DNA of 64,000 nt, taken from positions 1-64,000 of the IMG/VR virus record IMGVR_UViG_3300028536_000014. One strand, 5' to 3'. Shown here piece by piece: positions 1,633-59,600 of this stretch. The position numbers and the translations under genes are program-made. Each line of letters opens with the position of its first letter. Position 1 is the stretch's first letter. The notes under the pieces are model-generated. The model searched no databases and was not told the origin of the DNA. It saw only the letters and a program-made list of their open reading frames with translations.

Positions 1633-4614
1633 ATGACTGAGATTGTAAGTGGTTCTGCAAGTATAACTGATCTGTATAATCGGATTGGTTATTACAAAGG
1701 ATCTCCTGTCCGAATCGCTCAAGCGACTTATGATTTCCTTGATGAAGTCTTAAACAATCAAATCGATCTAGTTGATCCGACTAACCCATTCATCCTTGGG
1801 TTAGAAATGTCATCACTTCATACTGCACTTGCAGTTAACGAGTCACTTCTTAATCTTCGTCGTTCTTATGCTGGTTTGGCACAGACAGATCAAGATATTT
1901 ATCGGCATATGACGGATGCAGAATATATCGGTCGTTTTGCAACACCTGGAAGTGTCCCATTTACTTTCATGTTCGATTTGAATTCACTTTTAAATGCTCT
2001 GGTGGAAGATACCACAGAAAATTGCATGAAAGCGATTATTCCTCGTGATACTTTTATTACGATTGATACTTATACATTTACTCTGGAATACCCAATCGTC
2101 ATTCGCCAATTTCCAAATGGCGTCATGCAGATTACGCATGATACGTCAATTAGCTCACCAATTTCGACACCGTCTAATAATATCATTTCTTTCAAGACCC
2201 GTCAGGATTCCAACGGAATTAAATGGCTTTATTTCGTTGCTCCTGTAAAAGAAATGACCATTGTTACATCTAACTACGCTTTCCAACAACAGAAAGTATT
2301 TAATTTTAATATTCCATTTACATCTCAGTTCTTATTTGCACGTGTTTTTCAAAAATCGAATACGACAGGTGCTGATTGGGTTGAAATGGTAACAACACAT
2401 TCTGATCAAGTCTTTGATCAAACAACACCAACAGCTGTATTGATGGTAACAAGTTTGAATCTGAATGTTACCATTCCGTATATCTACAATACACTAGGAA
2501 CAGTTTCAGGTACAATTCGTATTGACCTCTATACAACTGATGGAAATATCGATGTCAATATGGGTGGATATACCCTGGATCAGTTTGCTATAAAGTTCAG
2601 AGCTATTGATTCTATTCGAGATACCAACGTATACACAAACATCTGGAGTACTGTCAATTATTTAACTTTCAGTGATCAAATTCTCTCTGGAGGATCTGAC
2701 GGTATAGCTTTTACAACACTGAAAAATAAAGTCATTAACTACGCTTTCGGTGGTTTTAATATTCCAATCACCACAGCACAGTTGGATACAGTAGGTGAAT
2801 TAAATGGTTTTACGATTGTTAGGAATGCCGATACTTTAACAGATCGTTATATGTTAGGTATTAGACCTATCCCTAATATTAGCATTGCAAATACTAGTAG
2901 TACTAGCACTACTTCAACAGGTGTTGTTACAAGTAATAATCAAAAATTATTAAGTCGTGCTAATGTCGGTATGATCCGTTTCTCTAGTGAGATTTCTGAT
3001 CTTCAGACGTCAGATAATGTTGTCAACAACAGTAACCGATTCACATTGTTGTCCAATACCGCATTTTCTTTAAATAATGGTATTGCATCATTGGTAGAAA
3101 GTTCGGTTATCAGCTCGATCAAATCTCAACCTGTTAATTCATTGGTTAGCACAGTGAATGCAGCTAGTTATGTTTATACGCCGTATTATTATGTTTTTGA
3201 TCTCCAGGATAGTTTACTGGATGTCAGACCGTACGATTTAGATCATCCAGATATCGCTAATCTAAACTTTATCCTTCAGAACAACACCCTGGCTTTGGTC
3301 GTTAATACTGGTAGTTACACTATTACAAAGACATCGACAGGTTATACTCTGACTATTGTAACTATTTCAGGATCTGCATATAAACAACTGAATGATAACC
3401 AAGTAGGTGTTCAACTTCGATTGGTGAATGAAGATGGGTCATTATCGGGTACGATCAATGGTGTTCAACAAGGAGTTGATTCGACTTCGAATGAAAGAAT
3501 CTATACGTTTGATATTCAAACGACTTATGACATTGATGGAAACAATTGTATCGAAATCATTAATGTCTATAATTCCGATGGTTTGATTTCTAATTTCTAT
3601 GTTGCATTGGATCGTGTTGTAGACATACTCTATACCACAACTTCTGTAACGAGTGGATTTGTTTCAGATGAAACCGATACATTAGTTAATAAAGCACAGC
3701 TTCCAATAGGTTCTGTAGGAAATACTCACGATCAACTTGAAGTTACATTCGGTAGTTATCTTGAGCATCTCTGGGCGCGTGTTAGAAGCTATGCAACAGG
3801 TGCTGACTATCAGACCTCTCCTTCGGATGTCCCGCAGCTCTATACGAAAGATATTTATCAGATTAACCCAATCACAAATTCCATGCTATTTATAGACGGA
3901 TCAGGTAATCCGTACTATAACAAAATTCACAGTATTGGTGATCCTGTTTTAGATGGAAGTGCGAATCCTGTTTATACTTATCGGGCTGGTGATAATATCC
4001 TCGATAACAATGGAAACCCAATTATCATTAGTGAAATTGGTGCTAAGAATGATTTCGATATCTTAGTCATTGATGCTAACTTGCTTTTCACAACTGATCC
4101 TAACTATGTAAGTTATAGAGATCAAGTTGTGAAAACTATGACAGAATGGATTACAGTAGATATTCTGGAAGTTCAAGCTCGTCTAATCGAAAGAACTGAA
4201 ATATTCTTCTATCCTCAAGCTTCGCTTGGTGTTACACAGATTATTGTTAACAATAATCAGAATGTTTATATTGATTCTGAACAAAGTCTTACAATAACAG
4301 TCTTTATTGATCAATCTGTTGTAAATGATACAGGTGTGCAAAATACCAACACCAATATCATTTCAGACTATCTGGATAACAATATTACACAATTGAAATT
4401 CACTATTAATCAAATGGAATCTGATCTCAAGACAGCGTTGGGTAATAACGTTTACGGTGTTACTATTCGTAATCTGGGTGGTACGTCGGATTATAAGTCC
4501 ATGACCATCACCGATCAACACAATCGTCTCTGTATCGCACGTAAACTGATTGCTAATCAAGATAACACTGTTACGATCCAACCTGATCTTAATATCATCT
4601 ACACAGGTTTCTAA
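1633..4614 (+). CDS. Large virion structural protein, probable baseplate wedge (phiKZ gp87-like)
   Basis: 993 aa beta-rich T/S/N/V-rich protein; synteny with phiKZ gp87. Confidence 0.6.
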   Translation: MTEIVSGSASITDLYNRIGYYKGSPVRIAQATYDFLDEVLNNQIDLVDPTNPFILGLEMSSLHTALAVNESLLNLRRSYAGLAQTDQDIYRHMTDAEYIGRFATPGSVPFTFMFDLNSLLNALVEDTTENCMKAIIPRDTFITIDTYTFTLEYPIVIRQFPNGVMQITHDTSISSPISTPSNNIISFKTRQDSNGIKWLYFVAPVKEMTIVTSNYAFQQQKVFNFNIPFTSQFLFARVFQKSNTTGADWVEMVTTHSDQVFDQTTPTAVLMVTSLNLNVTIPYIYNTLGTVSGTIRIDLYTTDGNIDVNMGGYTLDQFAIKFRAIDSIRDTNVYTNIWSTVNYLTFSDQILSGGSDGIAFTTLKNKVINYAFGGFNIPITTAQLDTVGELNGFTIVRNADTLTDRYMLGIRPIPNISIANTSSTSTTSTGVVTSNNQKLLSRANVGMIRFSSEISDLQTSDNVVNNSNRFTLLSNTAFSLNNGIASLVESSVISSIKSQPVNSLVSTVNAASYVYTPYYYVFDLQDSLLDVRPYDLDHPDIANLNFILQNNTLALVVNTGSYTITKTSTGYTLTIVTISGSAYKQLNDNQVGVQLRLVNEDGSLSGTINGVQQGVDSTSNERIYTFDIQTTYDIDGNNCIEIINVYNSDGLISNFYVALDRVVDILYTTTSVTSGFVSDETDTLVNKAQLPIGSVGNTHDQLEVTFGSYLEHLWARVRSYATGADYQTSPSDVPQLYTKDIYQINPITNSMLFIDGSGNPYYNKIHSIGDPVLDGSANPVYTYRAGDNILDNNGNPIIISEIGAKNDFDILVIDANLLFTTDPNYVSYRDQVVKTMTEWITVDILEVQARLIERTEIFFYPQASLGVTQIIVNNNQNVYIDSEQSLTITVFIDQSVVNDTGVQNTNTNIISDYLDNNITQLKFTINQMESDLKTALGNNVYGVTIRNLGGTSDYKSMTITDQHNRLCIARKLIANQDNTVTIQPDLNIIYTGF

Positions 4615-11555: not shown

Positions 11556-12866
11556 TTATGTCAGTACAGAACGAAGATCAACTTCTGCAGTTGACAACAC
11601 TTTGCCGTGCATAGCCTTTAACGACTGGTTCAGGATGAGATGTGAAACTTCCGTTAGTGGAATGACTAAACCTTCCTTATATTGGGAAAGCGCACGTCCA
11701 GAACACATTCGACATAGTCGATCGCCAGGACCTGCTTGACAATACGCTGGTGAACGTATAATCACGCTCTGGTCTAAATAATGGTTAGCATCTTCTATTT
11801 TTTCTATTAGTTTCATTTCAGTCTTTTCAATGATGGTACGACCAACCAACATCCCGATCGTATCTTTGGTATAGACTTTCTTGAGACCCAGTGTTGTTCC
11901 ACAATCTTCCATATCGATGGAATAGTTACTTCCTATACGAATCACTGATTTAGATACCACACCACCGTTGATGGTTTCTGTTCCACGTGAATAAGAACCA
12001 AAACGAGCACCGTTTAAAGATGCTGTATATTCAACTGGATCGGTTGGTTGACCTTCTTCCAACGTTCTGGTAATGGGAACGATAGGATCTTTCGGATCCA
12101 AACGTTCGGGTATACCAATAGCTAAAAACATTTTCTTTCTGGAAACATCCAGAACTTTTCCTTTATAGAAAGTTCCAAAGGCCTGATCATCTTTAAGCCA
12201 TTCACGATCAAAAGCTTTAAGTTTATTTTCATATTCAGCAAATACAGTAGGATCATTCAGGTTACTACCATATTCATTTAAGAGCTGTGTTCTATAGGCT
12301 GCTAACTCTGGAGACTTTGTAATACCTTTACGAGTAGCCGACCAGTTAGTAATGGGTGCAAATTGTTCAAGATAAACTAAACTGTCTCGAAACTTTAGAT
12401 ATTCATCAACATAAATTTTAGCATTGTCTCTGATTTCACCAGACTTAGGAGTGTCAATTAATCGAGATGCGATATACTTCTCATGGTTTTGGACACTTAA
12501 TTTTCCATTATCAAACGGATACTTAGGTCCAAAATTTGGTAGAATAATGACTGCATTGAAAATAAGATTTCCAATACAAGTTTCGAAAGACTCCTTGATA
12601 TTAGGCATCCAACTCGAATCTACTTTAATTCTTTCTTTGAAATGAAAGAGAGGTTCTTTCGTTAGACTATCATCAATTGTTTCAAGCGTTCCATCTTTAT
12701 TAATGAATCGATAAGCTGGATTAAAACTAATGATTCTTAAAAAATAAGTATTTTCAAGATAAGCATCTGATTTTTCTTTCGTTACACAGAAAGCTGAAAA
12801 TATCCAAGATAGATTATTCGCTAGACCAGCTTGAAGTGCTCTTTTAAGATAATCGTGTCTTTTCAT
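11556..12866 (-). CDS. Virion RNA polymerase beta' C-terminal subunit (phiKZ gp80-like)
   Basis: Bridge-helix-like GSYSRGTETINGG, EDCGT, SPAYC and LCRMC zinc motifs. Confidence 0.85.
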   Translation of the reverse strand: MKRHDYLKRALQAGLANNLSWIFSAFCVTKEKSDAYLENTYFLRIISFNPAYRFINKDGTLETIDDSLTKEPLFHFKERIKVDSSWMPNIKESFETCIGNLIFNAVIILPNFGPKYPFDNGKLSVQNHEKYIASRLIDTPKSGEIRDNAKIYVDEYLKFRDSLVYLEQFAPITNWSATRKGITKSPELAAYRTQLLNEYGSNLNDPTVFAEYENKLKAFDREWLKDDQAFGTFYKGKVLDVSRKKMFLAIGIPERLDPKDPIVPITRTLEEGQPTDPVEYTASLNGARFGSYSRGTETINGGVVSKSVIRIGSNYSIDMEDCGTTLGLKKVYTKDTIGMLVGRTIIEKTEMKLIEKIEDANHYLDQSVIIRSPAYCQAGPGDRLCRMCSGRALSQYKEGLVIPLTEVSHLILNQSLKAMHGKVLSTAEVDLRSVLT

Positions 12867-19440: not shown

Positions 19441-21471
19441 TTAAACTATTTTGGAATGAGAACCTAAGTTTGTATGCATGTGAAGATTTTCTACTACCTC
19501 TTTTGGTGTTAAGAATACGTCTATAGGAGAACTTGGACGATTTTCTTGGAAGAAGTTTCTTGGATTTGAGATCGTCTTAAACTGATCTTCATATGCATAA
19601 GCCGCACCCAAAGAACGATTTGTAATAACAAATCTTGCTACATGAAGTCCTGCATTCGGATGGTGTCGTGCCATTCCGTAATCTTCCACACCAGGCGTCA
19701 TGACAGCATAGATCAATACTTCAAGTAAACTTAAATTAACATCAATTTTAGTATTGACCTGATCAAATAACTCTTGAAGAATAAGCACGGGGGCATCAGC
19801 TTGTGCTCGCTTATGAAGATTCTTCGTATTAGATTCGATAATACTAGCAATATGATCAGCATGATCAGCATAGCTATATTCCATATCAGGAACACGTATC
19901 ACTGGAAACTTTGCATTCCATCCAGTCAAATCAAATACGAAATGATCATACTCGTTTGTACTCCATCCTTTATCTTTCAGGAAGTGAAGAAATTCATACG
20001 AGAAATATCCATAACGTTTATTCTGTTCGATCTGTATCGGTATCTCGACTATAGCGCCGTTGGACAAGGTTTCTTGAATAACGATCTGAGACAATGCGCT
20101 GATACGTCGTGGATTGATCTGATCGATCGTTCTTAACAGTTTAAGATCAGTAAGACCAATGGCGGTATTACGATTCACAATCATCTTGTATTGAGATGTT
20201 TTATTAAACGGTTTAAGATGAAACGACATGGTATTAAACATGAATGTCAAATATCGTTGAGCATCTTCTTTCATCAAAATCTCAGTACCAACAGCCGAAC
20301 CAATGATGTGTTTGGTTGACAGAATGGTCTGAGTCAGCTGTTGAGTTAAAGTTGCCGCACATAGATGTCCAAGGTTAGCAAACCGAGAAACATTATGATG
20401 AAGCATACCAAAACAGACTGAACAAACTTTATGAGGATTATTTTCCTGACAATGTAGTGATGAACGAATTGAAATAATCTTTCCGTATAGATGAGATTCT
20501 TTTCCGATAATTTCTTTTAAACTATTTGTGGTTTCATCCAGATACATCTTACCTTTCATGAACTTGAGATCACCAGCATAAATTTGGCGACCTGTTTCTG
20601 TATAGGAAGGTGGTTTAACTAACCACTCAATATATTTTGTTGAACCACAATCACCAGGTGAAATACTTTGCACAACCATCCCAGAGAGCTGTAGACGTCG
20701 TGCAAAGTATTCGGTATCCTGAAGTGGTGCTTCTGCAGAATAAAGATGCTTAGCAGCCGCACGAGACTCTGCAACGTAGTCATACAACTTATACATTCCA
20801 GTTGTATAATTCGACATGATCGGTGTACTCATGATCGTTCCGGTAACTTCAATCGGAAATCCACGTGCAAGAACACACTGATTAACTTGATTGATATTCA
20901 AAATCTTCATTCGAATAAATTGAACCAGATTATTTCTCTGGAACTTCGGATCATTAAAAATGACCTTGTGTGAATTCGAATAAAAATCTGCAATTGAATT
21001 AGCTGTCGGTTCTGTTTTATTTCTCAATTCGACAATTTGTTCTGCCTGAGCCAATTCTAGAATATCGAGAATATCTAAAGTCGCTACATAACGACCTGCA
21101 AATTTCATCAATTCATTATGAAGCTGGTTAGTGACGTAATAGATAACGCCAAGAATCTCTTCTTTCTGTTGATAGCTGGTGAGGTTATGATCCATAATTA
21201 GTTGTTTTGAGATTCGGCTAATAAGATCAATGTGTGTATTAGACGATAATAACTGACCATTCATAATGCTATCAGCATGATGAGAGTGTGTCAGAGGTAA
21301 GAATGGATACCGTCTATGAAACTCCCAGAAGTACCAGGAATAAACAGCTTTTCGAGTACTTGATGTAACTGTGATTCCATCATCATAAATGAGGTCAATT
21401 GTTTTCGGATAAGTTTCAAGAATAATAGTTGGAGTTAATGGTAATAAATCTCTAGCTTTAATTGCTGTCAC
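19441..21471 (-). CDS. Non-virion RNA polymerase beta' C-terminal subunit (phiKZ gp74-like)
   Basis: DTEYFARRLQL, GDCGS, SSLHC, VCSVCFG, LTQTILSTKH (trigger-loop-like). Confidence 0.9.
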   Translation of the reverse strand: MTAIKARDLLPLTPTIILETYPKTIDLIYDDGITVTSSTRKAVYSWYFWEFHRRYPFLPLTHSHHADSIMNGQLLSSNTHIDLISRISKQLIMDHNLTSYQQKEEILGVIYYVTNQLHNELMKFAGRYVATLDILDILELAQAEQIVELRNKTEPTANSIADFYSNSHKVIFNDPKFQRNNLVQFIRMKILNINQVNQCVLARGFPIEVTGTIMSTPIMSNYTTGMYKLYDYVAESRAAAKHLYSAEAPLQDTEYFARRLQLSGMVVQSISPGDCGSTKYIEWLVKPPSYTETGRQIYAGDLKFMKGKMYLDETTNSLKEIIGKESHLYGKIISIRSSLHCQENNPHKVCSVCFGMLHHNVSRFANLGHLCAATLTQQLTQTILSTKHIIGSAVGTEILMKEDAQRYLTFMFNTMSFHLKPFNKTSQYKMIVNRNTAIGLTDLKLLRTIDQINPRRISALSQIVIQETLSNGAIVEIPIQIEQNKRYGYFSYEFLHFLKDKGWSTNEYDHFVFDLTGWNAKFPVIRVPDMEYSYADHADHIASIIESNTKNLHKRAQADAPVLILQELFDQVNTKIDVNLSLLEVLIYAVMTPGVEDYGMARHHPNAGLHVARFVITNRSLGAAYAYEDQFKTISNPRNFFQENRPSSPIDVFLTPKEVVENLHMHTNLGSHSKIV

Positions 21472-21670
21472 AATTTTTATCCGTTTTAGGTCTGTTTCGA
21501 AATATTTTCATAATAGCATAAATTGGCCACACTAACCATGTTACTCCTATAAATAAAGACAGTAACATAATAACCGTAGGTTTTTGTGAACTCTTGTTAC
21601 TATTTTTAACGATAAACACACAAGCTACGATTATTGCTATTTCGATATAAGCAATTTCAATTATCTTCAT
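21458..21670 (-). CDS. Small membrane protein between nvRNAP beta and beta' genes
   Basis: Two hydrophobic helices; likely start MKIIEIAY at 21670 (ORF track starts at 21730). Confidence 0.6.
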   Translation of the reverse strand: MKIIEIAYIEIAIIVACVFIVKNSNKSSQKPTVIMLLSLFIGVTWLVWPIYAIMKIFRNRPKTDKNCDSN

Positions 21671-23831
21671 CGTCTCTTTCCTGAATATACTGATTAATTT
21701 CCGGTAAATACTCAGGTTTAAATCCAGCACACATGAAGATATGATTCACAATCTGAATAGGACGAGAAGCACCTAGTGGTATTACATCACGATCAATAAT
21801 CCGACTAATCTGACTAGGATTATTAGATGCCAATAAATTCCAGTAAATGTTACGACGTGTTACAGGATTGTTAGTCCGATCGAACATTTCCGCAATAGAT
21901 TCGGCTCCAGTATAGCAAGCAAAGATTCGAGATTCAGTTTCTCCAGAAAGACGAGTTGGAGAATTACGATAAGGGTAAGCGAATTTCTCGGATTTAGTTA
22001 CGGAAGAAAGAATGCCGAAATGTTGTAGTCTAGCAGTAGAAGTTGCAGACCATTCACTTGCTAACTTATCCAGAAGGAACATATAAACCTTTCCGATTCT
22101 GATCTTCTTAACTGTTTCAACTTGTTGACCTGATTGGTCAACATATTTAACTGTTGTTCTAGTTGGTTTAAATAGTTGTTCGATTTCTGGAACAATTTGA
22201 TCAGGTAATTTCTTGTTATCTACCGGTAAGAATATCTTACAGGTCCCGTCGTTAATGATGTCACATAGATGTTCAGATTGTTCATTGCGAGATAAAGCAC
22301 TGAAATAATCCGGCATGATATCATTGAAAACACGATAGAAACTCATCAAGTAATCGTAACACTCTAAAAACAGTTCTTGATTTATTTCTAATAACATTTC
22401 TTGATTGACTTCTGGACGCTTATTAAAATCATCAATATGATTTGTTGGTATAATTCCCAACTGTTGTGTAATACGAACAGTAATGTCGTGACAAGCACAG
22501 GTCATATATTGTTCATAAGACTGACCAATATTCATTCGGTGGAAAACCGGACCTGGATCGATAATCATGTCGGCACGAACACCATCAGGACGAATAGGCA
22601 TTTCGTGATCTTCCATGATTTTACAAACGACACCTTTACTTCCGCTTTGATTACTAAACTTATCTCCAATATTTGGAATCAGTTCATATTCGATTACAAA
22701 TTTAGCGTGATACTCATCAATATGTTCTTTTCGATAAATGAGTTTCAATGTTTGTTTCATTTTCTCAGCGTTATGATTTGTGATCGCAAGTGCTCTGACC
22801 AGAATCTTATTAAACGCAGGACTGATATTAATAAACGGTGTTCCAAACTTACGTTTACGTTCAGATCGTAAACGTTCTTCTGTTTCTACTATTTCACGAT
22901 TATAACGTAGAAATGCTTGGACATACTTATCAGCATGATCCGACATTCCAACAGGTGTATTTCGAATAGGGTTATTATTCGAAATGATTTCTATATCGAT
23001 AACACGACCACGTCCTTGACGAACATAAATCTGTTTATCAAATGTATAGTCAATTTCACGCATATCGTTGATACCCATATCAACAACATAGGTATCTGGG
23101 TCATAGGTACGTAGCGCCATCAATAATCCATCTTCTCGAAGATAATCTCCGATGTCTGGAAATGGTTTATTATCACCATAGATATTGATAGGAAATTCAT
23201 TACTTCCCCATTCAACAACACGAGTGTCATAAACTTTATATTTCCAATTCTCAAGTTCCCCACGACGAACAGCGATACCATCTTCAGAAACACCTGGGAT
23301 AGCCATATAGGTTACGTTAACATTACGACCATATGCGTAATTATTTCCGTCTTTAACACCAGGGCTATCCATGAAAACTGTATCTTTAGGAATATAAGTA
23401 GTGTGGCGTAAAAGATCCATTCCTTGTTGAGGGACACAACTCCAACCGAAATACTGATGGAAACTTCGATAAATCGGAATCATAAAACAATCGATTTCTC
23501 CAGTTTCCGAATTTTCATAGATAACCAGAGATTCGGGATTAAGTTTTAAACTATCCTGACCTACACCTTGAGGATATCGATCTATTACCTTAATGATCTT
23601 GCCATTGGCAGGCATGCGAACACCCAAGGTATATTTTGCCAATTCAGATTCAGGACCAGCTTGGATAATCTTTTCTTCCAATCCGTTAGTGATCAAATGC
23701 TGACTGACATGACTTGCCATCATCACTGAACGTGAGCTTGAGTTATTGATTGCGAAAGGGTTAATCGCATGGATCCCCAAAAACTGAGGACGAATCTCGT
23801 TTACTCTATCACTCTGTTTTTCCAAAACCAA
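21657..23831 (-). CDS. Non-virion RNA polymerase beta C-terminal subunit (phiKZ gp71-73-like), uninterrupted
   Basis: NSSSRSVMMASHVSQ, SEDG, IGDKFSNQSGSKGV, RMNIGQ, RLSGETE; start probably TTG at 23825. Confidence 0.92.
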   Translation of the reverse strand: MVLEKQSDRVNEIRPQFLGIHAINPFAINNSSSRSVMMASHVSQHLITNGLEEKIIQAGPESELAKYTLGVRMPANGKIIKVIDRYPQGVGQDSLKLNPESLVIYENSETGEIDCFMIPIYRSFHQYFGWSCVPQQGMDLLRHTTYIPKDTVFMDSPGVKDGNNYAYGRNVNVTYMAIPGVSEDGIAVRRGELENWKYKVYDTRVVEWGSNEFPINIYGDNKPFPDIGDYLREDGLLMALRTYDPDTYVVDMGINDMREIDYTFDKQIYVRQGRGRVIDIEIISNNNPIRNTPVGMSDHADKYVQAFLRYNREIVETEERLRSERKRKFGTPFINISPAFNKILVRALAITNHNAEKMKQTLKLIYRKEHIDEYHAKFVIEYELIPNIGDKFSNQSGSKGVVCKIMEDHEMPIRPDGVRADMIIDPGPVFHRMNIGQSYEQYMTCACHDITVRITQQLGIIPTNHIDDFNKRPEVNQEMLLEINQELFLECYDYLMSFYRVFNDIMPDYFSALSRNEQSEHLCDIINDGTCKIFLPVDNKKLPDQIVPEIEQLFKPTRTTVKYVDQSGQQVETVKKIRIGKVYMFLLDKLASEWSATSTARLQHFGILSSVTKSEKFAYPYRNSPTRLSGETESRIFACYTGAESIAEMFDRTNNPVTRRNIYWNLLASNNPSQISRIIDRDVIPLGASRPIQIVNHIFMCAGFKPEYLPEINQYIQERDDEDN

Positions 23832-41241: not shown

Positions 41242-41311
41242 AGAGTATGTATGATTGAAATAATTTAAAAACAAAAAAAAAATAGAGAAGAGACTTCGGT
41301 CTCTTCTCTAT
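41242..41311 (-). promoter_or_regulatory. Terminator hairpin + early promoter cassette
   Basis: Hairpin 41282-41311 then TTTCAATCATACATACTCT; near-identical to 49970-50033. Confidence 0.7.
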
Positions 41312-41336
41312 ATCGATGTTGTTTGAATTAAACTGG

Positions 41337-45633: not shown

Positions 45634-46011
45634 CTAATTATCATTCGGTAAAACAGATTGAGGTATTTCTCGATTAATTTGTTTGATACAACCTGCGACC
45701 AAACTGTCAGCATAAGCAGATGATACCGTTTCCAACAGTTGGCGTGCTTGCATCAGACTTTGTAAGAGCTTCAAATAAGCATCAATTTGAGCATTCTGAC
45801 TGAAAGCATTTCCATAGTTAGGAAACGGTAATGGTGTAAATCCGGCTGGAAAAGTTGACTTATTTAAAGGTTGTTGAATAAAACGATGATGAGAAGGAAC
45901 GTAAGTTGATGTAATCGTTAATAACTCAGAATTGTTACTACGCGTGTTTTCAACCTCTTTTTCCAACATTCTGACGAGATCAGCAGTGTGTTTCAAGACA
46001 TCGTGATTCAT
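45634..46011 (-). CDS. Hypothetical protein
   Basis: 125 aa ORF with SD. Confidence 0.65.
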   Translation of the reverse strand: MNHDVLKHTADLVRMLEKEVENTRSNNSELLTITSTYVPSHHRFIQQPLNKSTFPAGFTPLPFPNYGNAFSQNAQIDAYLKLLQSLMQARQLLETVSSAYADSLVAGCIKQINREIPQSVLPNDN

Positions 46012-46029
46012 CTGGATATTCCTTCTGGA

Positions 46030-46251
46030 CTATCTGATACACCGAACATTCTTATCTTTACCACCTTCTACTAGCTTTAATCTGAGATATTCACACTGAG
46101 TCTTCGAGATATCTTTGATTATCTTAACCTGACCATTGTTATCGGTACTAAATAAGACATAGTGTTCATCACAATTGTCTTGAGCAAATGTTACAGAATA
46201 AGGAAACAGGATAGCAAAAACAGCAAAGCTATCCAAAAAAATATTTTTCAT
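46030..46251 (-). CDS. Small secreted/periplasmic protein with signal peptide
   Basis: Hydrophobic N-terminus ending TFA-Q; three Cys. Confidence 0.6.
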   Translation of the reverse strand: MKNIFLDSFAVFAILFPYSVTFAQDNCDEHYVLFSTDNNGQVKIIKDISKTQCEYLRLKLVEGGKDKNVRCIR

Positions 46252-46276
46252 GTTGATTCCTTAAAAGAAAAAATAA

Positions 46277-46308
46277 AGTGAAGAGCACGGAGTTCCGTGC
46301 TCTTCACT
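46277..46308 (-). terminator. Terminator directly after tasA
   Basis: 15-bp perfect inverted repeat agtgaagagcacgga / tccgtgctcttcact followed by a U-tract on the minus strand. Confidence 0.8.
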
Positions 46309-46315
46309 AACTTTG

Positions 46316-47533
46316 TTACCGACGCTGCCAGTTCCCTTCTTTTGCTACCCGATGCTTTTTCAGAAGTACTCCCTCCGAATATTCAGACGCCACCGGAAGA
46401 CCTTCAGCCGTACGATACGCGGTATAAAAATCCACCAAGAACCGTTTGACACAGAACCGAAGAGCCATGCGATGCTTCTGCAGAGGAGACTTTCCAGCAT
46501 GCTTAGGATTGTTTCCAAGCCGTTCCTTGTAGTTGTAGTAGGCCATCCCGTACGGAGAACCTTCACGCTCAACTGTGAAGCCCTGTCCCATCAGGAAATC
46601 ATTGATGACAGAGTTGGGATCTTCTTCGCCGATGGTCTTCTTGTCGAGTCCATGCTCAACAGCCAGCTCGAGACGTTTTGCCATACCCATTGCTTTGCCG
46701 TTGACCTTGAAAGAGGTCACCTTGAGGAATGCCGGTCCGATGACACCCAACAGCTTGGTTTTGAGGAACGGAGAATAGGTAATGGAATCACGAACAGCTG
46801 GGTTGTCGTTCTTGTCGATGTAGTCACGCTTCACCAACGAGTAGGACTTCATGTCACGTGCAACGCCCACCACATTGCACACCACACCCTTGTGAAAGAA
46901 CACGCCGTCCATGTTTTCCAACTCCGGAGCGTTCATCGCCTGTTCGAACGAAAGCCTGATGGTCTTGTTACCGACTTCGTATTCCACCACCTGGACGACA
47001 TCCAAACCACCGTACGCCCAAAGACTGGACGGGTACTCGGCCTTGTGGATGTCGATCTCGGAGATGAGAACACCAGCCGCTGCCGGGCCGATACCTGCTA
47101 CGCCTTGAAGAAAGTTCTTGTAGACAGGAACCGTTTTGAGCATGATGCCGATGTCAGCGAAGTGCTGCTCTTCGACGTCCAGAATCTTGACGTAGTTCTC
47201 GATCAGGAACAATTCGGCCATGTTGGTGATCAAATCGTCGGGTTGGAAATTGCGTTCCATCTGCAGACGTGTGACCATCTTGCCGCCGGTGATCTCGATG
47301 ATGCCGTCAGTTATACGATTGTAGGAATCACGCAGACGCTTCAGGATACCCTTTTCCTGAGCTCCGAGTTCCTTCTCAGACATGCCGTCGGTCGACATTC
47401 CAAGTTTGGTTCTGAAATTGCCAGCGGTGCGGTTACCGATCATGATACGCAGCTGCTGAAGATCGTAAACCGAACGAACCATCGTCCGAATCTGGGATCT
47501 TTGATATGCGGTGTTTGATGTGGGGTTACTCAC
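46316..47533 (-). CDS. tasA: TasA-like Nop-domain (IS110 C-terminal/Transposase_20-like) RNA-binding protein with no RuvC or HNH domain
   Basis: N-terminal coiled coil (RTMVRSVYDLQQLRIMIGNR); GVAGIGPAAAGVLISEIDI...SSLWAYGGL; YSPFLKTKL; YYNYKERL; HRMALRFCVKRFL; GTG start with AAGGAG SD; ~53-58% GC in sampled lines; adjacent to 36-nt dual-repeat array. Confidence 0.85.
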   Translation of the reverse strand: MSNPTSNTAYQRSQIRTMVRSVYDLQQLRIMIGNRTAGNFRTKLGMSTDGMSEKELGAQEKGILKRLRDSYNRITDGIIEITGGKMVTRLQMERNFQPDDLITNMAELFLIENYVKILDVEEQHFADIGIMLKTVPVYKNFLQGVAGIGPAAAGVLISEIDIHKAEYPSSLWAYGGLDVVQVVEYEVGNKTIRLSFEQAMNAPELENMDGVFFHKGVVCNVVGVARDMKSYSLVKRDYIDKNDNPAVRDSITYSPFLKTKLLGVIGPAFLKVTSFKVNGKAMGMAKRLELAVEHGLDKKTIGEEDPNSVINDFLMGQGFTVEREGSPYGMAYYNYKERLGNNPKHAGKSPLQKHRMALRFCVKRFLVDFYTAYRTAEGLPVASEYSEGVLLKKHRVAKEGNWQRR

Positions 47534-47625
47534 AATGATACTCCTTAGATTGATCTCACCTTTTTATTAAGGATGAGAAGATTGGCTTAACAGCTGGATG
47601 AAACGTTGACAACTCTGAATTCGGT

Positions 47626-49952
47626 TGATGCGCTACTTTCTATTGGTTTGCTTATACGCGTTGACACACTACGAGCAGATGGATGTCTTTTTTCACGTGA
47701 TTGAAACGTTGATGTCCTTTGGGGAAATCAGTTTATTTGACACACTTGTACGTCATGGGTGAATATCTAATTATGATGCACTAAATCCTTCTGGGTTACT
47801 AGCCAATAGAAATACGCTTAGTGTCGTTGTGTGAACACATTTCAATGACCTGACACGCTTTCATAGTGCGGATTACTACTTTTCATTGACACACTTGCTT
47901 ACATTGGGTAGCTATGAGAAGGTGATTGCACTGAACTCTCACATAAAGTATATGTGACTGAAATTGTTTCAGAATGGAGCGCTGTATCTTTAAGGTTTAC
48001 TCACGATCAGTTGACACACTTTTTCTCAATGGGTGACTAATTAGGGTTGATACACTAATCGAAAATGGGTGAATACGTCCTTTTGATACGTTAACGTCGT
48101 TTGGATTTACTTACGGCGTATGACTCACTTTTTTCCAATGGATAACTATGGATCGTTGGAACACTTTAACTTGCTGGATGAATTGCAGAAGATAGTGAAA
48201 CACTAGAATCTCGTGGATGGATACTTCCCGTTGATGCGTTTATCTGATATGGATGTCTACTGATGGTTAACACACGCTCGCGCTATTGGGTTTATTATTT
48301 CCACAGACACGTTCGTTGACACTGAGTGAATAAATTACTATGACACGTTCTGTACTTGTGGATGACTCTGGCGACAATAACACACTCGCTTATATTGGAT
48401 TACTTTGATATAATGATACATTCGCTGATTTTGATGGATAACTCGAATTCCATGACACATTCAAATACTAAGGTTGACTCTGATTCTTTAACACGTTTTA
48501 TCTTAGTGGATGTCTACAACCCAATGACACAATTAATCTTTGAAGGGTTTCTTTTCTCTTCTAATGTTCACTCTTGATCTTTGGATGAATACAGATCAAT
48601 GATCCGCTAGTTCAAATTGGGTTACTTCCGTACATTGACACACTTTTGTTGACTGGATGTCTACCGACTGATGATGCACTTAGCATTTATGGATTACTAT
48701 ATGTAAAAGGTACGATCTTTGCCCTTGGGGTTCTGAGGAAACTTGACTCAATTGATCGTTTTGGTTGACTTCTTCTTCAAGTTACACTTGTCACTACTGG
48801 ATGTCATGTAGATTTTTATTCACATATCAAGCATGGTTATCTTTTCATCTTTGATACACTTTCCACTAGTGGGCGACTTTTAATTCCTGATACGTTTTAC
48901 GGTTATGGTTGACTATTTGTCTACGACACACTTGAACCCCATGGTTGACTAATTGTAGTTGATACAATAATAACATCTGGATTTTTTCCTTATATTGTTT
49001 CACTACTTAACATTGGGTTTATTACCGCGTATGGTGCGCTAACGTTCTTTGGGATACTTTATTGATTTGACACACTTTTGATCTTTGGGTCACTTTAGAT
49101 CACTAATTCACTAGCCGATATGTGGTTATCTTCTTCCTCTAGATACGTTTAACCACTATGAATGTCTTAACTTCTCTGACATACTTTATGGAGATGGGTT
49201 TCTTTAATGGAATGATACATTTACGCAATATGGGTTCATCTTGAGTGATGACACACTATCGTTCTTTGGTTGACTTTCAGACAGTGGTTCACTAGATACT
49301 TATGGAGATCTTTTTTTGGGGGGGGGGGTGATTCGTTTCCTCATTATGGATTTCTATTTGACATTAACACATTAATTTTCGCTGGGTTTATTCACACCGA
49401 TAACACGATAGATGATATTGGGTTTCTCCAGCATTTAACACACTAAGCTAATTTGGGTGAATGGTTTTAATTGATACACTTCGTATCGATGGTTGAATTC
49501 CAACATTTGGTACATTTTACTTCGATGATTTTCTTGATCTCTTTGATGCGATTGTATTCAATGGTTGTCTACACACTTATGTCACATTAGGTTATTTTGG
49601 ATGACTTTTTGTCGATGACGCACTAACGCTACTTGGATAACTCGTTTTCGATGATACATTGTCAGTTCACTGGGTGACTGTCGTCTTTTGATGCACTTTG
49701 AAAGGGTAGGTTTATCGGAGTCTGTGATACACTAAACCTCTATGGTAGAATTATGGTTATTGATACACTTGAATATTTATGGGTTACTGATAGTCAATGA
49801 TATTCGCTGCGTTCTTCTGGTTGACTCACTAATGGTAACACATTTGGTTGCTATGGTGTTCTTTCTTCTTCAAATTACACTAATGAATCGTGAGAATATT
49901 TCTATTGTGATACACTTGTACCTAATGGATGAATCTTTTCCCATGATTATGA
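47626..49952 (-). ncRNA. TIGR-type array: about 62 tandem 36-nt units (9-nt repeat, 9-nt spacer, 9-nt repeat, 9-nt spacer)
   Basis: Plus-strand consensus TGAYACACT-N9-TGGRTKACT-N9. Examples: 48012 tgacacact ttttctcaa tgggtgact aattagggt; 48048 tgatacact aatcgaaaa tgggtgaat acgtccttt; 49908 tgatacact tgtacctaa tggatgaat cttttccca. Hand count: 8 units in 47626-47922 and 54 in 47975-49943; spacers appear unique. Confidence 0.9.
47945..47964 (-). promoter_or_regulatory. Early-type promoter inside the TIGR array
   Basis: Minus strand ATTTCAGTCACATATACTTT interrupts the 36-nt register. Confidence 0.65.
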
Positions 49953-49969
49953 GAACTCTCGTTCTCAAA

Positions 49970-50033
49970 TAGAGTATGTATGATTGAAATAATTTAAAAA
50001 CAAAAAAAGAGAAGAGACAAAAGTCTCTTCTCT
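49970..50033 (-). promoter_or_regulatory. Terminator + early promoter cassette driving the TIGR array
   Basis: Hairpin 50008-50033, then ATTTCAATCATACATACTCT about 20 nt before the first array repeat. Confidence 0.75.
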
Positions 50034-50054
50034 ATGAATTTCTTTTTTTTTTAC

Positions 50055-50387
50055 CTACATGATTACTCGGTCGGAAAGACCGTCAATCACGCTATTGATC
50101 AACTCAGGATGCTTGTTGATCAACGTCAATACAAGACACTCGATATCATCCGGAGTCTTCTGCCCCGTTTCCCACCGCTGCATCGAGCCAGATGCAAACC
50201 CGTAGTAATTTTCAAATTCTCGTCGGGTAAGATCAGTCCGTGTCCGCGTAACCATGATGTTGAAAGGAGTTAACATCATAGCTTCACGAGTGGGTTTTCG
50301 ATCACCCACTGTACATTCCACTATTTCTTTGAGACCACGCAAAACAACTGCTTGCATTCCTTCAGACTGCCAGCCTTCATGTTGCAT
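50055..50387 (-). CDS. XRE/Cro-like HTH protein (HigA/MqsA-type DNA-binding domain)
   Basis: TRREFENYYGFASGSMQRWETGQKTPD...LINKHPE. Confidence 0.7.
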   Translation of the reverse strand: MQHEGWQSEGMQAVVLRGLKEIVECTVGDRKPTREAMMLTPFNIMVTRTRTDLTRREFENYYGFASGSMQRWETGQKTPDDIECLVLTLINKHPELINSVIDGLSDRVIM

Positions 50388-55640: not shown

Positions 55641-56090
55641 TTATTCTGATCGATCTGGTTTCATAAAACGCAAACCCATGGCGTCACGACGTTTACCTTT
55701 ATGACGATTATTAGCATGTATCTGAGGTTGAAATTGGAAATCGATAGGAAGTCCACTGATCTTGGTTAAATGTTCTGAAATAAGAACAGTCAGAAGAAGC
55801 CATCGAGGATCATGTTCCCATTGACCATTTGGACCAGAATCAGGAAACAATTTCGCAAACCCTTCATCTGACATAATGTATCTTAAATCGACATCTCTCC
55901 AATCAGGTCGTTCTAATACAGACCCAACTAAATAAATACCGTATTCACCAAATGCATCATGCAGATTCTGACAAGCTTGTTCCAATATGAATTTGGCTGG
56001 AGCACCGACATAACAAAACTTAGTTCGAGGTTTAAGCGAATTTTCAGTTTTGACAACTTCATCAGTTACTTCAGCGGTTTGTTCACTCAT
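55641..56090 (-). CDS. Minimal nucleotidyltransferase (Pol-beta superfamily)
   Basis: IYLVGSVL...RDVDL signature plus downstream PIDFQ. Confidence 0.7.
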   Translation of the reverse strand: MSEQTAEVTDEVVKTENSLKPRTKFCYVGAPAKFILEQACQNLHDAFGEYGIYLVGSVLERPDWRDVDLRYIMSDEGFAKLFPDSGPNGQWEHDPRWLLLTVLISEHLTKISGLPIDFQFQPQIHANNRHKGKRRDAMGLRFMKPDRSE

Positions 56091-56515
56091 TACGCTGCTG
56101 ATTCTGCGGTGCTTTCTTGTACTGGAGCCACCTGTGATTCCAACACGATATCGAAATCTTCATCGGAATATTCTGTCTTACCTTCCAAGATATCGGTAAC
56201 GATACCTACCAGAAAAGGATTGAGAATCATTTCACCCACGATATCCTTGACCAACTTGAGATCGTCAATCAATAGACCAGGCTTCTTACGCTTGGAGATT
56301 TTGCGAATGAGGTTATACTTGGCCATCTTCTGACCCATGGTATCGCGTTCTTTCGTTGGTTCAGAATTCAGCGCCATCAACAACACCTTACGAAGTGTGA
56401 AGGGGATGTGCTTGAATTCCTTTCCGTTATTTGTTGCTGGATCAGTTGCAACAACTTCGGCAAAAGGTTTGCCGTCAAAATTCATCAACTGTTGATCATA
56501 ATCAATGTCAGCCAT
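56090..56515 (-). CDS. Hypothetical protein, possible tail-fibre assembly chaperone
   Basis: 141 aa, immediately downstream of the tail fibre gene. Confidence 0.5.
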   Translation of the reverse strand: MADIDYDQQLMNFDGKPFAEVVATDPATNNGKEFKHIPFTLRKVLLMALNSEPTKERDTMGQKMAKYNLIRKISKRKKPGLLIDDLKLVKDIVGEMILNPFLVGIVTDILEGKTEYSDEDFDIVLESQVAPVQESTAESAA

Positions 56516-56687
56516 CTACATCACTCCTTAATCAAAAAGTAGAAGACTTGTGGAGTAAAATATTTTACTCCACATAAGTCATTTGTTTTATACAGATCGA
56601 AATAGAGCCTATTTTGATGTTAGCTCCATCCGCATTAAATACGGTAACACTACATTTATTAATGATAATGTTACCGTATGTTTAAGT

Positions 56688-59600
56688 TTACGCACTACCC
56701 TTTATAAAGCCTTGAGCAACAGCCCAGTTTCTTAACTCATTAACCAATGTTACAATCCCATCAGCTTGAACTTGTGTGGTATAACCGAATGGTGCTGTTA
56801 CAGTTGAAGCAGTTGTAGCCACTGCTGCTTGAGCTGCTCCGGATCTTTGTGCTATTGCAGTTACTCCATAGAACCCAAGTTTCTGAGTTGTTGCAGTACC
56901 AATAACAGTACCAGTACTCGTACCAACTGCAAAATTTATGGCATCGCTAACAGTGATCTGAGCACCTAAGGTGGTCGGTGCATTAAGCGCTAAAGTAGCA
57001 CTTGAATTACCGATGATGACAGCACCACTTGAAGTACCTGTATTAATATTGGTAGCAGTATTGTTACTAACATTGATGTTAGTAATACCTAAGAACTGTG
57101 CAGCAATATTAGTCGTAGCACCTGCTGGTGCTTTAACAGTTAAGCTATAAGCAGTTCCTTGTGCACCAACGTTACCCGCATCAATATAAAGTGCGTGTGT
57201 GTTTGTTGCAGTATTATTCGTACCCTTTACAACAGCACCCGCTATATAAACATTGATAGCGTCTGTTGTTGTAACGGTAGCGTTAGTTGAAGCCAGCGTC
57301 TGTAATAAGAACGACGCCATTGTTTCGATAACAGCTGTACCACTAACTGCTGTAGAACTGTCTGTAAGCGTCTGTGCTTGGACGGAAAAAGAAGTCGCTG
57401 CCGTACCCCAAGCTGTTCGTGTAACGCCTCCTCCGACGAATACACCACCACCAGAGACAGATGCACTACCATGGAAGAAAGATGCCCCTTCAACCCATAA
57501 TGCTCTTGCATTGGTAATAGTTACGTTTGTACCATTAACCGGTGCTCCAGCAATATAAAGAGTGCCAGCATTTGAGTAGGTAACGGATGTATTAGTGGAT
57601 GCAATAGTCGGAATACCAATTGCATTGATAGCAGCGTTCGTGACAGTACCAGACGTGGCTGTTGAGCTGTCAGTATATGTGGCTGCATCAGTACGTATGT
57701 TGATACCGTTCGTATTCCATGCAGCAGCACTAATAGCTCCTAGGGTATGTAAACGGGCTGCTCCAGTTCCACCGATACCCAAACCAGTTCCTGATGCGAA
57801 TGTTAAACCGGAGTTATCGGTTAAACGTCCACCTGTTGTTGAAAGAGCAACTCGTCCTGATGTTAAAGCAATATCAGTCAGAGCAATCGTCTTTCTAGCA
57901 GTACCTGTTGTAATCGTAAATGATAAAGTATCGGTTACGAATTCAACCACACCCGCTACTGCTGATGTATTAAGCACCCCAGAAGTAAACTTCAAAGGAG
58001 ATAAAGTTGTCGTACCAGCAAATACTGTTATAGGTCCAGCCAGTGAAATCGTATTTGCTGTATTACCAATTGTAACTGCGGATGATGTTGTACCTGTACC
58101 AATGCCAACAGTAAAATTGGAAGATGAATTAATTAATACAGCGCCACCAGCAGAAGTAAATGCTCCGGTAACTGTAGTAGGAGCCAACAATGCTAATGTG
58201 TTAGCTGAATTTCCTATCGTTACTGCAGAAGTAGTACTTCCAGTACTAATATTGACAGCAAAGTTAGAAGATGGATTAAGATTAATAGCACCACCAGCCG
58301 ATGTAAATGTTCCTGTAACTGTCAAAACAGTTGTAGGATCTACAGTACCACCGATCTGAGTATTACCATTAATGACATTCATGGCTGTGCCAGTCATTCT
58401 TAGGTTATACTTACCAGTAGCTGATGCTATTAATCCTTGAAAAGCGGTAGCGTTTCCAGATCCTTTTGTTTGATCTGAAACACTAAACCCTGTTAATGAA
58501 GTTGCAGTCGCTCTACCTATGTTAGGAACATTGAATCCTAATATTGAACTGGTAAAGTCTCCTGTACCAGAAAGACTGGGTACAGAACAGGAGAAATATG
58601 TCCAAGCTCCAAAATTACCAGTTGATGTAGCTGACGATTGTGGTAAAACTGTAACACCTGTACCTGCCACATGTCCTGCATTAGAAACTCTTGGTATGAT
58701 GTATGAACAAACAATATTCATAGTAGCCGCAACAGTGTGTGATGCTACTAATTGAATACGACTTGCTGCAATAGAAGAAGCTGTTTGTATAGCACCTGTT
58801 ACATTGAGTTCATCTACCTTTCCGGTAACGTTAGATGCACCTCCGGAATCAAGAGATCCCATATAACGAAGTACATTACCGTAAGTAATTCCTGTAGGGA
58901 ATACTCCACCAGGAATCTGGCCTAACGTGTTTGCTGGATCGATCGATGTAGTCTGATAATTTAATTGACCTGTTAATAATGCAGATCCATTAATTTGAAG
59001 TGTGGTTGCTAGATCATCGGTTGTTCCTCCAACCAACGTTCTTCCACCACTACCTTGTATCATCAGAGATCGAAGAGTTCCAGTACCGCCGTTTTGGGTT
59101 TCGATTCTATATAAATTATTAGTGTTATCCCAGAAAATAGATCCTCTTTCATAATTCGTCAGAGTTGTTTCAAGAGTGTTATATAAGTTAAATTTAACTC
59201 TTGGATCAGTTCCTGAAATTGGAAGATGAGTTTCTAATATATTGCTATTAGAATCAAATACTCTGTAATAAGGACCTGTCTGTGATGCGATACCTTGAAT
59301 TGAAAAGACGGTATCGGTAACAATACTGCCTGATATAGATAAAATACCTAAATTACTACCCGATGCAATATTGAATCCAGCACCAGAAGTAAATTCCTTA
59401 TATCCTGTTATTACTTCGCTTCCTGCTAAATGAACAACAGAACTATCGGTTGCTTTAGCTGCTAAATCTGTAGTCAATCCAGAAACTTGGGACTCACTAA
59501 TTGATCCAGTAATAGAGACAGCATTACCAGTAATATTACCATTTATTTTGGAACCAGCCAAAGCGGTTATCCAAGAAGGATCATTATAAGAACCTGATGT

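Follow-up and report, generated by a model that had tools for sequence, protein, structure and literature searches.

A Dual-Repeat TIGR-TasA Locus of a Soil Jumbo Phage with a Predicted Phage Promoter Inside Its Guide Array

The Locus and Its Source Phage

The stretch of DNA analysed here, to which we refer as the window, covers the initial 64 kb of a virus record of 244,725 bp that has direct terminal repeats and originates from a soil metagenome assembly. Its minus strand carries a TIGR-TasA locus, in which the reading order is an intrinsic terminator, a copy of a phage motif that we read as a promoter (P1), 54 guide units, a second predicted promoter copy (P2), eight further guide units, the tasA gene, and a closing terminator (Table 1). 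The gene directly upstream of the locus (50055–50387, minus strand) encodes a helix-turn-helix domain of the MqsA-antitoxin type (E = 1.1e-07).

Table 1. Features of the TIGR-TasA locus in window coordinates, listed in the order in which the minus strand is read
Feature	Start	End	Strand	Remarks
Intrinsic terminator	50008	50033	-	11-bp stem and T-run; end of the upstream gene, insulating the locus
P1, predicted upstream promoter copy	49965	50000	-	53.7 bits; 20-mer at 49990–49971
Distal TIGR sub-array	47975	49952	-	55 edge (R1) and 54 loop (R2) repeats, 54 units
Non-array insert	47933	47974	-	42 nt; fits neither repeat
P2, predicted promoter copy in the array	47939	47974	-	52.7 bits; makes up nearly the entire 42-nt insert
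Proximal TIGR sub-array	47626	47932	-	9 edge and 8 loop repeats, 8 units
Untranslated stretch from the last edge repeat to tasA	47534	47625	-	92 nt; degenerate repeat-like remnants
tasA	46316	47533	-	405 aa, starts with GTG; TIGR-associated protein that has a Nop domain and lacks a nuclease domain
Strong intrinsic terminator	46277	46308	-	14-bp stem with 8 GC pairs, T-run; directly after tasA, ends the unit

The genome is 90% coding, and a crude ORF-based gene call places 248 of its 290 genes on the minus strand. Two of the genes within the window encode RNA polymerase beta-like subunits of the phiKZ-type multisubunit kind (21657–23831 and 19441–21471), with matches to phrog_3295 and phrog_3015 at E = 1e-151 to 1e-184; a third, weaker polymerase-subunit match is found at 11562–11918, and a tubulin gene lies at 126965–127405 in genome coordinates. 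The nearest cultured relatives of the polymerase subunit, at 32–39% identity, are phiKZ-like jumbo phages of Burkholderia, Ralstonia, Pseudomonas, and Xanthomonas, and the source phage is itself a phiKZ-like jumbo phage from soil. A nucleotide search of the array region against phage records returned no match, the accompanying protein search with TasA gave only Ralstonia phage RSL1 (33% identity), and an Rfam scan of the window found no family. Among sequencing runs searched with the locus sequence a single one matched, namely a DNA soil metagenome, and no RNA run did.

The base composition of the locus stands out from its surroundings, with a GC content of 46% over 46001–48000, the block that holds tasA, versus 34–40% in most other 2-kb blocks of the window (the highest of these others reaching 42.5%, at 56001–58000) and about 37% in the genome as a whole. 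Because the GC content of tasA exceeds that of the genome, the tasA cassette may stem from a more GC-rich phage, such as that of the related locus L002, and may have been refitted with local promoters after its acquisition.

Anatomy of the TIGR Array

Between positions 50010 and 47560 the minus strand has its autocorrelation maximum at a lag of 36 (0.40), with lags of 72 and 18 next in rank. Tandem Repeats Finder reported nothing on the array, because its spacers all differ, as is expected for arrays of this kind, and parsing was performed with custom position weight matrices, one for each of the two repeats. For the choice of strand we relied on published work, according to which the repeats have CCA at their end. 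The two repeats, R1 (consensus AGTGTATCA) and R2 (consensus AGTNAHCCA), are both 9 nt long and alternate with 9-nt spacers to form 36-nt units; in total, the array holds 62 units with 126 alternating R1 and R2 repeats, running from 49952 to 47626 on the minus strand. Exactly 9 nt separate neighbouring repeats in 105 of the 124 spacers, and all spacers are mutually different. In terms of the box motifs, the first two letters of R1 and R2 are AG or AU and the last two CA (UCA in R1 and CCA in R2), the published UG start being clear in R1 only; this would fit, in a variant form, the rule that box D at the start and box C at the end covary between the two repeats. No second TIGR array was found in a genome-wide search.

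Both sub-arrays begin and end with R1, which identifies R1 as the edge repeat. The copies that start the sub-arrays are degenerate in both cases: the distal sub-array opens with a degenerate edge repeat and closes with AGCGCTCCA, and the first edge repeat of the proximal sub-array carries a 1-nt insertion. The weakest stretch of the entire array is the 5' end of the distal sub-array, beside the upstream promoter copy.

An earlier reading of this DNA, made from the letters alone and referred to here as the sequence-only reading, had placed a break of the 36-nt register at 47923–47974 and divided the array into 54 and 8 units. The coordinates agree with those of the parsed insert (47974–47933) and its flanking R1, and matrix parsing yields exactly the same division. 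The units of 40 and 41 nt that it had noticed in the proximal sub-array are likewise present, arising from long A spacers of 13 nt (unit starting at 47710) and 14 nt (unit starting at 47859). Its impression that the proximal units are the more degenerate ones does not hold, neither for the repeats, with mean scores of 8.9 bits in the proximal versus 9.3 bits in the distal sub-array (Mann–Whitney p = 0.85), nor for spacer length, with 2 of 16 proximal and 17 of 108 distal spacers deviating from 9 nt (Fisher p = 1.0). The further proposal that the older end of the array lies next to the gene finds no support, no polarity of unit gain and loss having emerged and no spacer inside the arrays being common to the 11 related loci described below.

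Several individual units deserve mention in their own right. At 49311–49328 on the minus strand, a run of 11 C followed by 7 A stands in place of an edge repeat and lengthens the respective distal unit; the tract is identical in an independently assembled contig and could be prone to slippage. The units starting at 49112 and 48608 have related spacers, with 4 differences in 18, and within each of these guides the A and B spacers hold the complementary hexamers TGATCT and AGATCA, which hints at related, internally repeated targets.

Targets within the phage itself were sought for the 44 units in which both spacers are 9 nt long, across the 245-kb genome and in two real and two control geometries. 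No match was found at 0 or 1 mismatch, and the real geometries gave counts equal to those of the control geometries, so that regulation of the phage's own genes by perfect guide matches was rejected.

The TasA Protein

The product of the gene downstream of the array belongs, on the evidence of sequence profiles and of a predicted structure, to the TasA class, as it matches the solved TasR and TasH proteins in both profile and fold and has no nuclease domain. A profile built from 26 homologues gave E-values of 2.7e-18 for TasR (9mty) and 5.6e-11 for TasH, whereas a Pfam search of the protein gave no match, nuclease domains included. The AlphaFold model, with a pLDDT of 84.9, shows an N-terminal coiled coil, a Nop domain, and two beta-rich insertions, and its top 10 Foldseek matches are all TasH or TasR with a probability of 1.00, followed by IS621 and Nop5; the TasH and TasR matches cover only the part of TasA that is common to them. 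Homologues number 367 at E ≤ 0.001, many of them on contigs of 200–285 kb.

Two additional segments, at residues of about 185–224 and 275–325, occur in most of the jumbo-phage homologues as well and are lacking from the family members of 287–323 aa. The model shows both to be rich in beta structure, and neither is matched in TasH or TasR.

With regard to function, TasA proteins from elsewhere are RNA-guided transcriptional repressors (bioRxiv 10.64898/2026.09.09.750476). In SpTasH, residues Y289 and H296 form the tyrosine/histidine pair of the C-terminal loop that processes the guide precursor (PMC13421893). At the C-terminus of the phage protein, Y385 aligns with Y289, and its invariant H394 lies two residues past the column of H296, which makes it plausible, as judged from the alignment, that this TasA processes its own precursor.

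The Break in the Array

The array is interrupted only once. The insert is positioned exactly between two edge repeats, namely the copy of AGCGCTCCA at 47983–47975 and the copy with the 1-nt insertion at 47932–47923, and no guide unit is destroyed as a result of this placement. From the R1 at 48020 to the R1 at 47895 there are 125 nt, that is, 3 x 36 + 17, which corresponds to a register shift of 17 nt. The units that flank the break are among the weakest of the array, the last distal loop repeat ending in CCT rather than CCA.

A Logan contig of 8750 nt, which is an independent assembly of the same soil sample, crosses the break at a depth of about 11.5 and is identical to the window over 46300–49999. 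No stretch of the insert region longer than 17 nt recurs exactly anywhere else in the genome. On account of these two observations a mis-join at a repeat is unlikely, and we regard the break as a real structure.

A Strand-Specific Motif Across the Genome

The sequence-only reading had recognized in the break a 20-mer (47964–47945, minus strand) that it took for a phage promoter motif. At up to 3 mismatches the window contains 3 matches to this 20-mer, where 0.02 would be expected; the corresponding stretch of the copy that precedes the array (P1) differs from it at 4 positions. A 17-nt core, searched across the whole genome with up to 2 mismatches, gave 19 matches, all 19 on the minus strand. 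Alignment of the 17 strong copies revealed about 36 conserved nucleotides, composed of an upstream TTnTTAAA-like part, the core, and a downstream TAnnTGA, and a 55-column matrix built on this motif found 32 minus-strand matches above 12 bits in the 245-kb genome and none on the plus strand. P1 and P2 both rank among the five best of these 32 copies, and P2 retains the upstream as well as the downstream conserved part.

Copies of the motif fall between genes in 26 of the 29 cases checked, in a genome that is 90% coding; most of them are found 30–80 nt upstream of the start of a minus-strand gene. For 11 of the 17 strong copies, a terminator hairpin with a T-run lies immediately ahead of the motif, within about 15 nt. 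Strand bias, intergenic placement, distance to gene starts, and adjacency to terminators together lead us to infer that the motif is a promoter class of the source phage. The genome-wide statistics fit the proposal of the sequence-only reading in this respect, the copy in the array being one of full strength.

In jumbo phages with multisubunit RNA polymerases, operons are preceded by one motif that bioinformatic means can locate, and wherever it was tested this motif turned out to be the early promoter that the virion polymerase reads, with a conserved AT-rich part centred near -10 (PMC7598289). As the source phage is phiKZ-like and encodes subunits of such a polymerase, it is reasonable, by analogy, to regard the motif as an early (virion polymerase) promoter, in keeping with the label "early" that it had been given previously. 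On the same analogy, transcription would be predicted to start near 47940 for P2 and near 49965 for P1, in each case 8–14 nt ahead of the first edge repeat.

A classical host promoter was rejected as an identity for the motif, which does not fit sigma-70 spacing; a generic sigma-70 promoter scan of the locus region found 12 promoters where 13.1 were expected, that is, not above chance.

Two further observations concern the motif copies elsewhere. The terminator–promoter modules at 41242–41330 and 49971–50040 share about 37 identical bases and similar hairpins, and the Logan assembly breaks exactly at the module ahead of the array, which suggests recent duplication or exchange of regulatory modules. 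Three strong promoter copies, at 114437, 116278, and 135100 in genome coordinates, are followed by 310–350 nt without a called gene of at least 50 aa, a space in which small genes or non-coding RNAs may be encoded.

Related Loci

For comparison, we considered 11 related loci, whose TasA proteins are 40–51% identical to that of the source phage. Eight of them (L002, L003, L004, L005, L007, L009, L010, and L012) have unbroken arrays of 25–59 units upstream of tasA with the same repeat consensus, two (L006 and L011) have their arrays downstream of tasA, and the array of L008 is degenerate. A promoter-bearing internal break was found in none of the 11 arrays, and a low-scoring stretch in the array of L010 remains in register. 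Weak copies of a similar motif are present just ahead of the array, after a terminator, in L007 (at 3884), L008 (at 4612), and L010 (at about 3700–3740, by eye). Since similar cores precede the arrays of relatives, the promoter class would be common to the lineage and older than the source phage, whereas the internal copy is peculiar to the source phage among the loci compared. As the 11 related loci do without such a break, an internal promoter is not needed for the system to function.

A Model of Nested Transcription and Its Alternatives

The sequence-only reading had foreseen two guide pools of different stoichiometry, each with a promoter of its own, and had regarded the proximal units as the 5' leader of the tasA mRNA. 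The notion of separate pools is not supported, as no terminator or inverted repeat was found ahead of P2 and no terminator between P1 and the one that follows tasA. Because transcription from P1 meets no terminator before P2, the two transcripts are probably nested with a common 3' end. As for the leader, array units would indeed precede tasA on the P2 transcript, yet this arrangement is not special to P2, given that eight relatives have their entire array, unbroken, immediately ahead of tasA. The ribosome-binding site AAGGAG is found at 47546–47541, and a short hairpin in the tasA leader is weak, has no T-run, and does not fold significantly better than expected (z = -0.28).

The reading that we favour, and in which we place moderate confidence, is that of an insulated minus-strand unit with nested transcripts from P1 and P2, in which P2 boosts tasA and the proximal guides. 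The P1 transcript would comprise all 62 units and tasA, and the P2 transcript only the eight proximal units and tasA. Being fed by both promoters, tasA and the proximal guides would be more abundant, as mRNA and as guides, respectively, and the gain in dosage could be roughly twofold, because the motif scores of P1 and P2 are nearly equal. P2 would, in addition, allow tasA to be expressed without some 2 kb of untranslated array having to be transcribed first. Cleavage of the precursors at their edge repeats, for which TasA itself would be responsible, would give 36-nt guides and would also release the tasA mRNA from its array leader.

A more far-reaching version of this model, which we consider rather unlikely, envisages a two-tier guide programme, in which the eight proximal guides and TasA are made in larger amounts than the 54 distal guides, or at a different time, and in which TasA exerts feedback on its own expression by cleaving at the last edge repeat and so maturing its mRNA. 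If this were true, the phage would tune which targets are silenced first by the position of a promoter within its guide array.

The nested model has to be weighed against three other explanations of the same structure. The break might owe its existence to recombination that joined two arrays, or an array and a promoter module, so that P2 would be a by-product without a selected role, which may fire but would provide neither a special guide pool nor regulation. We hold this to be doubtful, with the following points in its favour: none of the 11 related loci has an internal break; the terminator–promoter modules give the impression of being mobile or of having been duplicated, about 37 identical bases being common to P1 and the copy at 41260 at the very place where the Logan assembly breaks; and the 46% GC of tasA against a genome of about 37% suggests an acquired cassette that was refitted with local promoters. 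A relic should, however, have drifted, whereas P2 has kept both conserved parts of the motif and a place among the five best of its 32 copies, and its precise placement between edge repeats keeps every unit processable.

It is improbable, in our estimation, that the motif is instead some other strand-specific cis element, namely a signal for RNA processing or stability or the binding site of a phage regulator, that would mark a point at which RNA is cleaved or bound. Its departure from sigma-70 spacing and the chance-level result of the generic promoter scan (12 versus 13.1) would be compatible with such an element. Yet the 11 of 17 strong copies that have a terminator hairpin with a T-run no more than about 15 nt ahead of them would be out of reach of upstream transcripts, the copies are intergenic and 30–80 nt upstream of gene starts, and long phage-specific motifs ahead of operons are early promoters in those RNA-polymerase-encoding jumbo phages that have been profiled (PMC7598289). 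An assembly artefact, that is, a chimeric join at a repeated promoter sequence, can be given hardly any credence. Promoter modules do recur in the genome, and the P1 module does break the Logan assembly; the Logan contig nevertheless runs across the P2 break without a difference, the 17-nt longest exact repeat of the P2 region is below assembler word sizes, and the units on both sides of the break are built from the same repeats.

Comparison with Known Systems

The literature openly acknowledges a gap where the transcription of TIGR arrays and of tas genes is concerned, and the 2026 survey of these systems points out that sequence alone cannot separate co-transcription of tas genes and guides from transcription by separate promoters, for which start-site mapping is needed. 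The present locus is unusually readable in this regard, because the motif extends over about 36 nt and occurs strictly on one strand and because the unit is enclosed by terminators, and it offers a concrete, testable model of nested guide and effector transcription in which guide dosage could be set by position. It leaves the understanding of TIGR-Tas itself unchanged, being an architectural variant of a known system. Our literature search found no published description of an internal promoter in a TIGR array.

The closest known systems are the dual-repeat TIGR-TasA loci (Faure et al. 2025, Science, PMC12045711; Xu et al. 2026, bioRxiv 10.64898/2026.09.09.750476), with which the locus shares two 9-nt repeats, 9-nt spacers, and 36-nt units, as well as its location in a phage, an adjoining nuclease-free Nop-domain protein, and array ends that are edge repeats, in line with the published rule by which edge repeats stand at both ends of TIGR arrays (PMC12045711). 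It differs from them in having 62 units instead of the 5–15 that are usual in the 2025 set, in the division of the array by a single 42-nt insert that consists almost entirely of the promoter motif, in the position of the terminator after tasA and not after the array, and in the two extra segments that set its TasA apart from the homologues of 287–323 aa. A TIGR array divided into sub-arrays, three in number, has also been described for the stem-loop TasA array of a Peromyscus gut contig (PMC12045711); that array is of the stem-loop type, and its separator measures about 450 nt, whereas the separator here is 42 nt long and holds a recognisable phage promoter motif. The early promoters of phiKZ-like and AR9-like phages (PMC7598289) resemble the motif in being associated with a multisubunit polymerase and in presenting one conserved AT-rich motif in a single orientation ahead of many operons, the sequence of the motif being specific to the lineage in the present case.

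A further parallel lies outside the TIGR systems. In the type II-C CRISPR arrays of Neisseria and Campylobacter, each repeat contains a promoter that is used by the host polymerase. If P2 fires, the phage locus would share with these arrays the initiation of transcription inside the array and a guide dosage that depends on position; it would differ from them in relying on one inserted copy of a phage-specific motif, which would also feed the effector gene.
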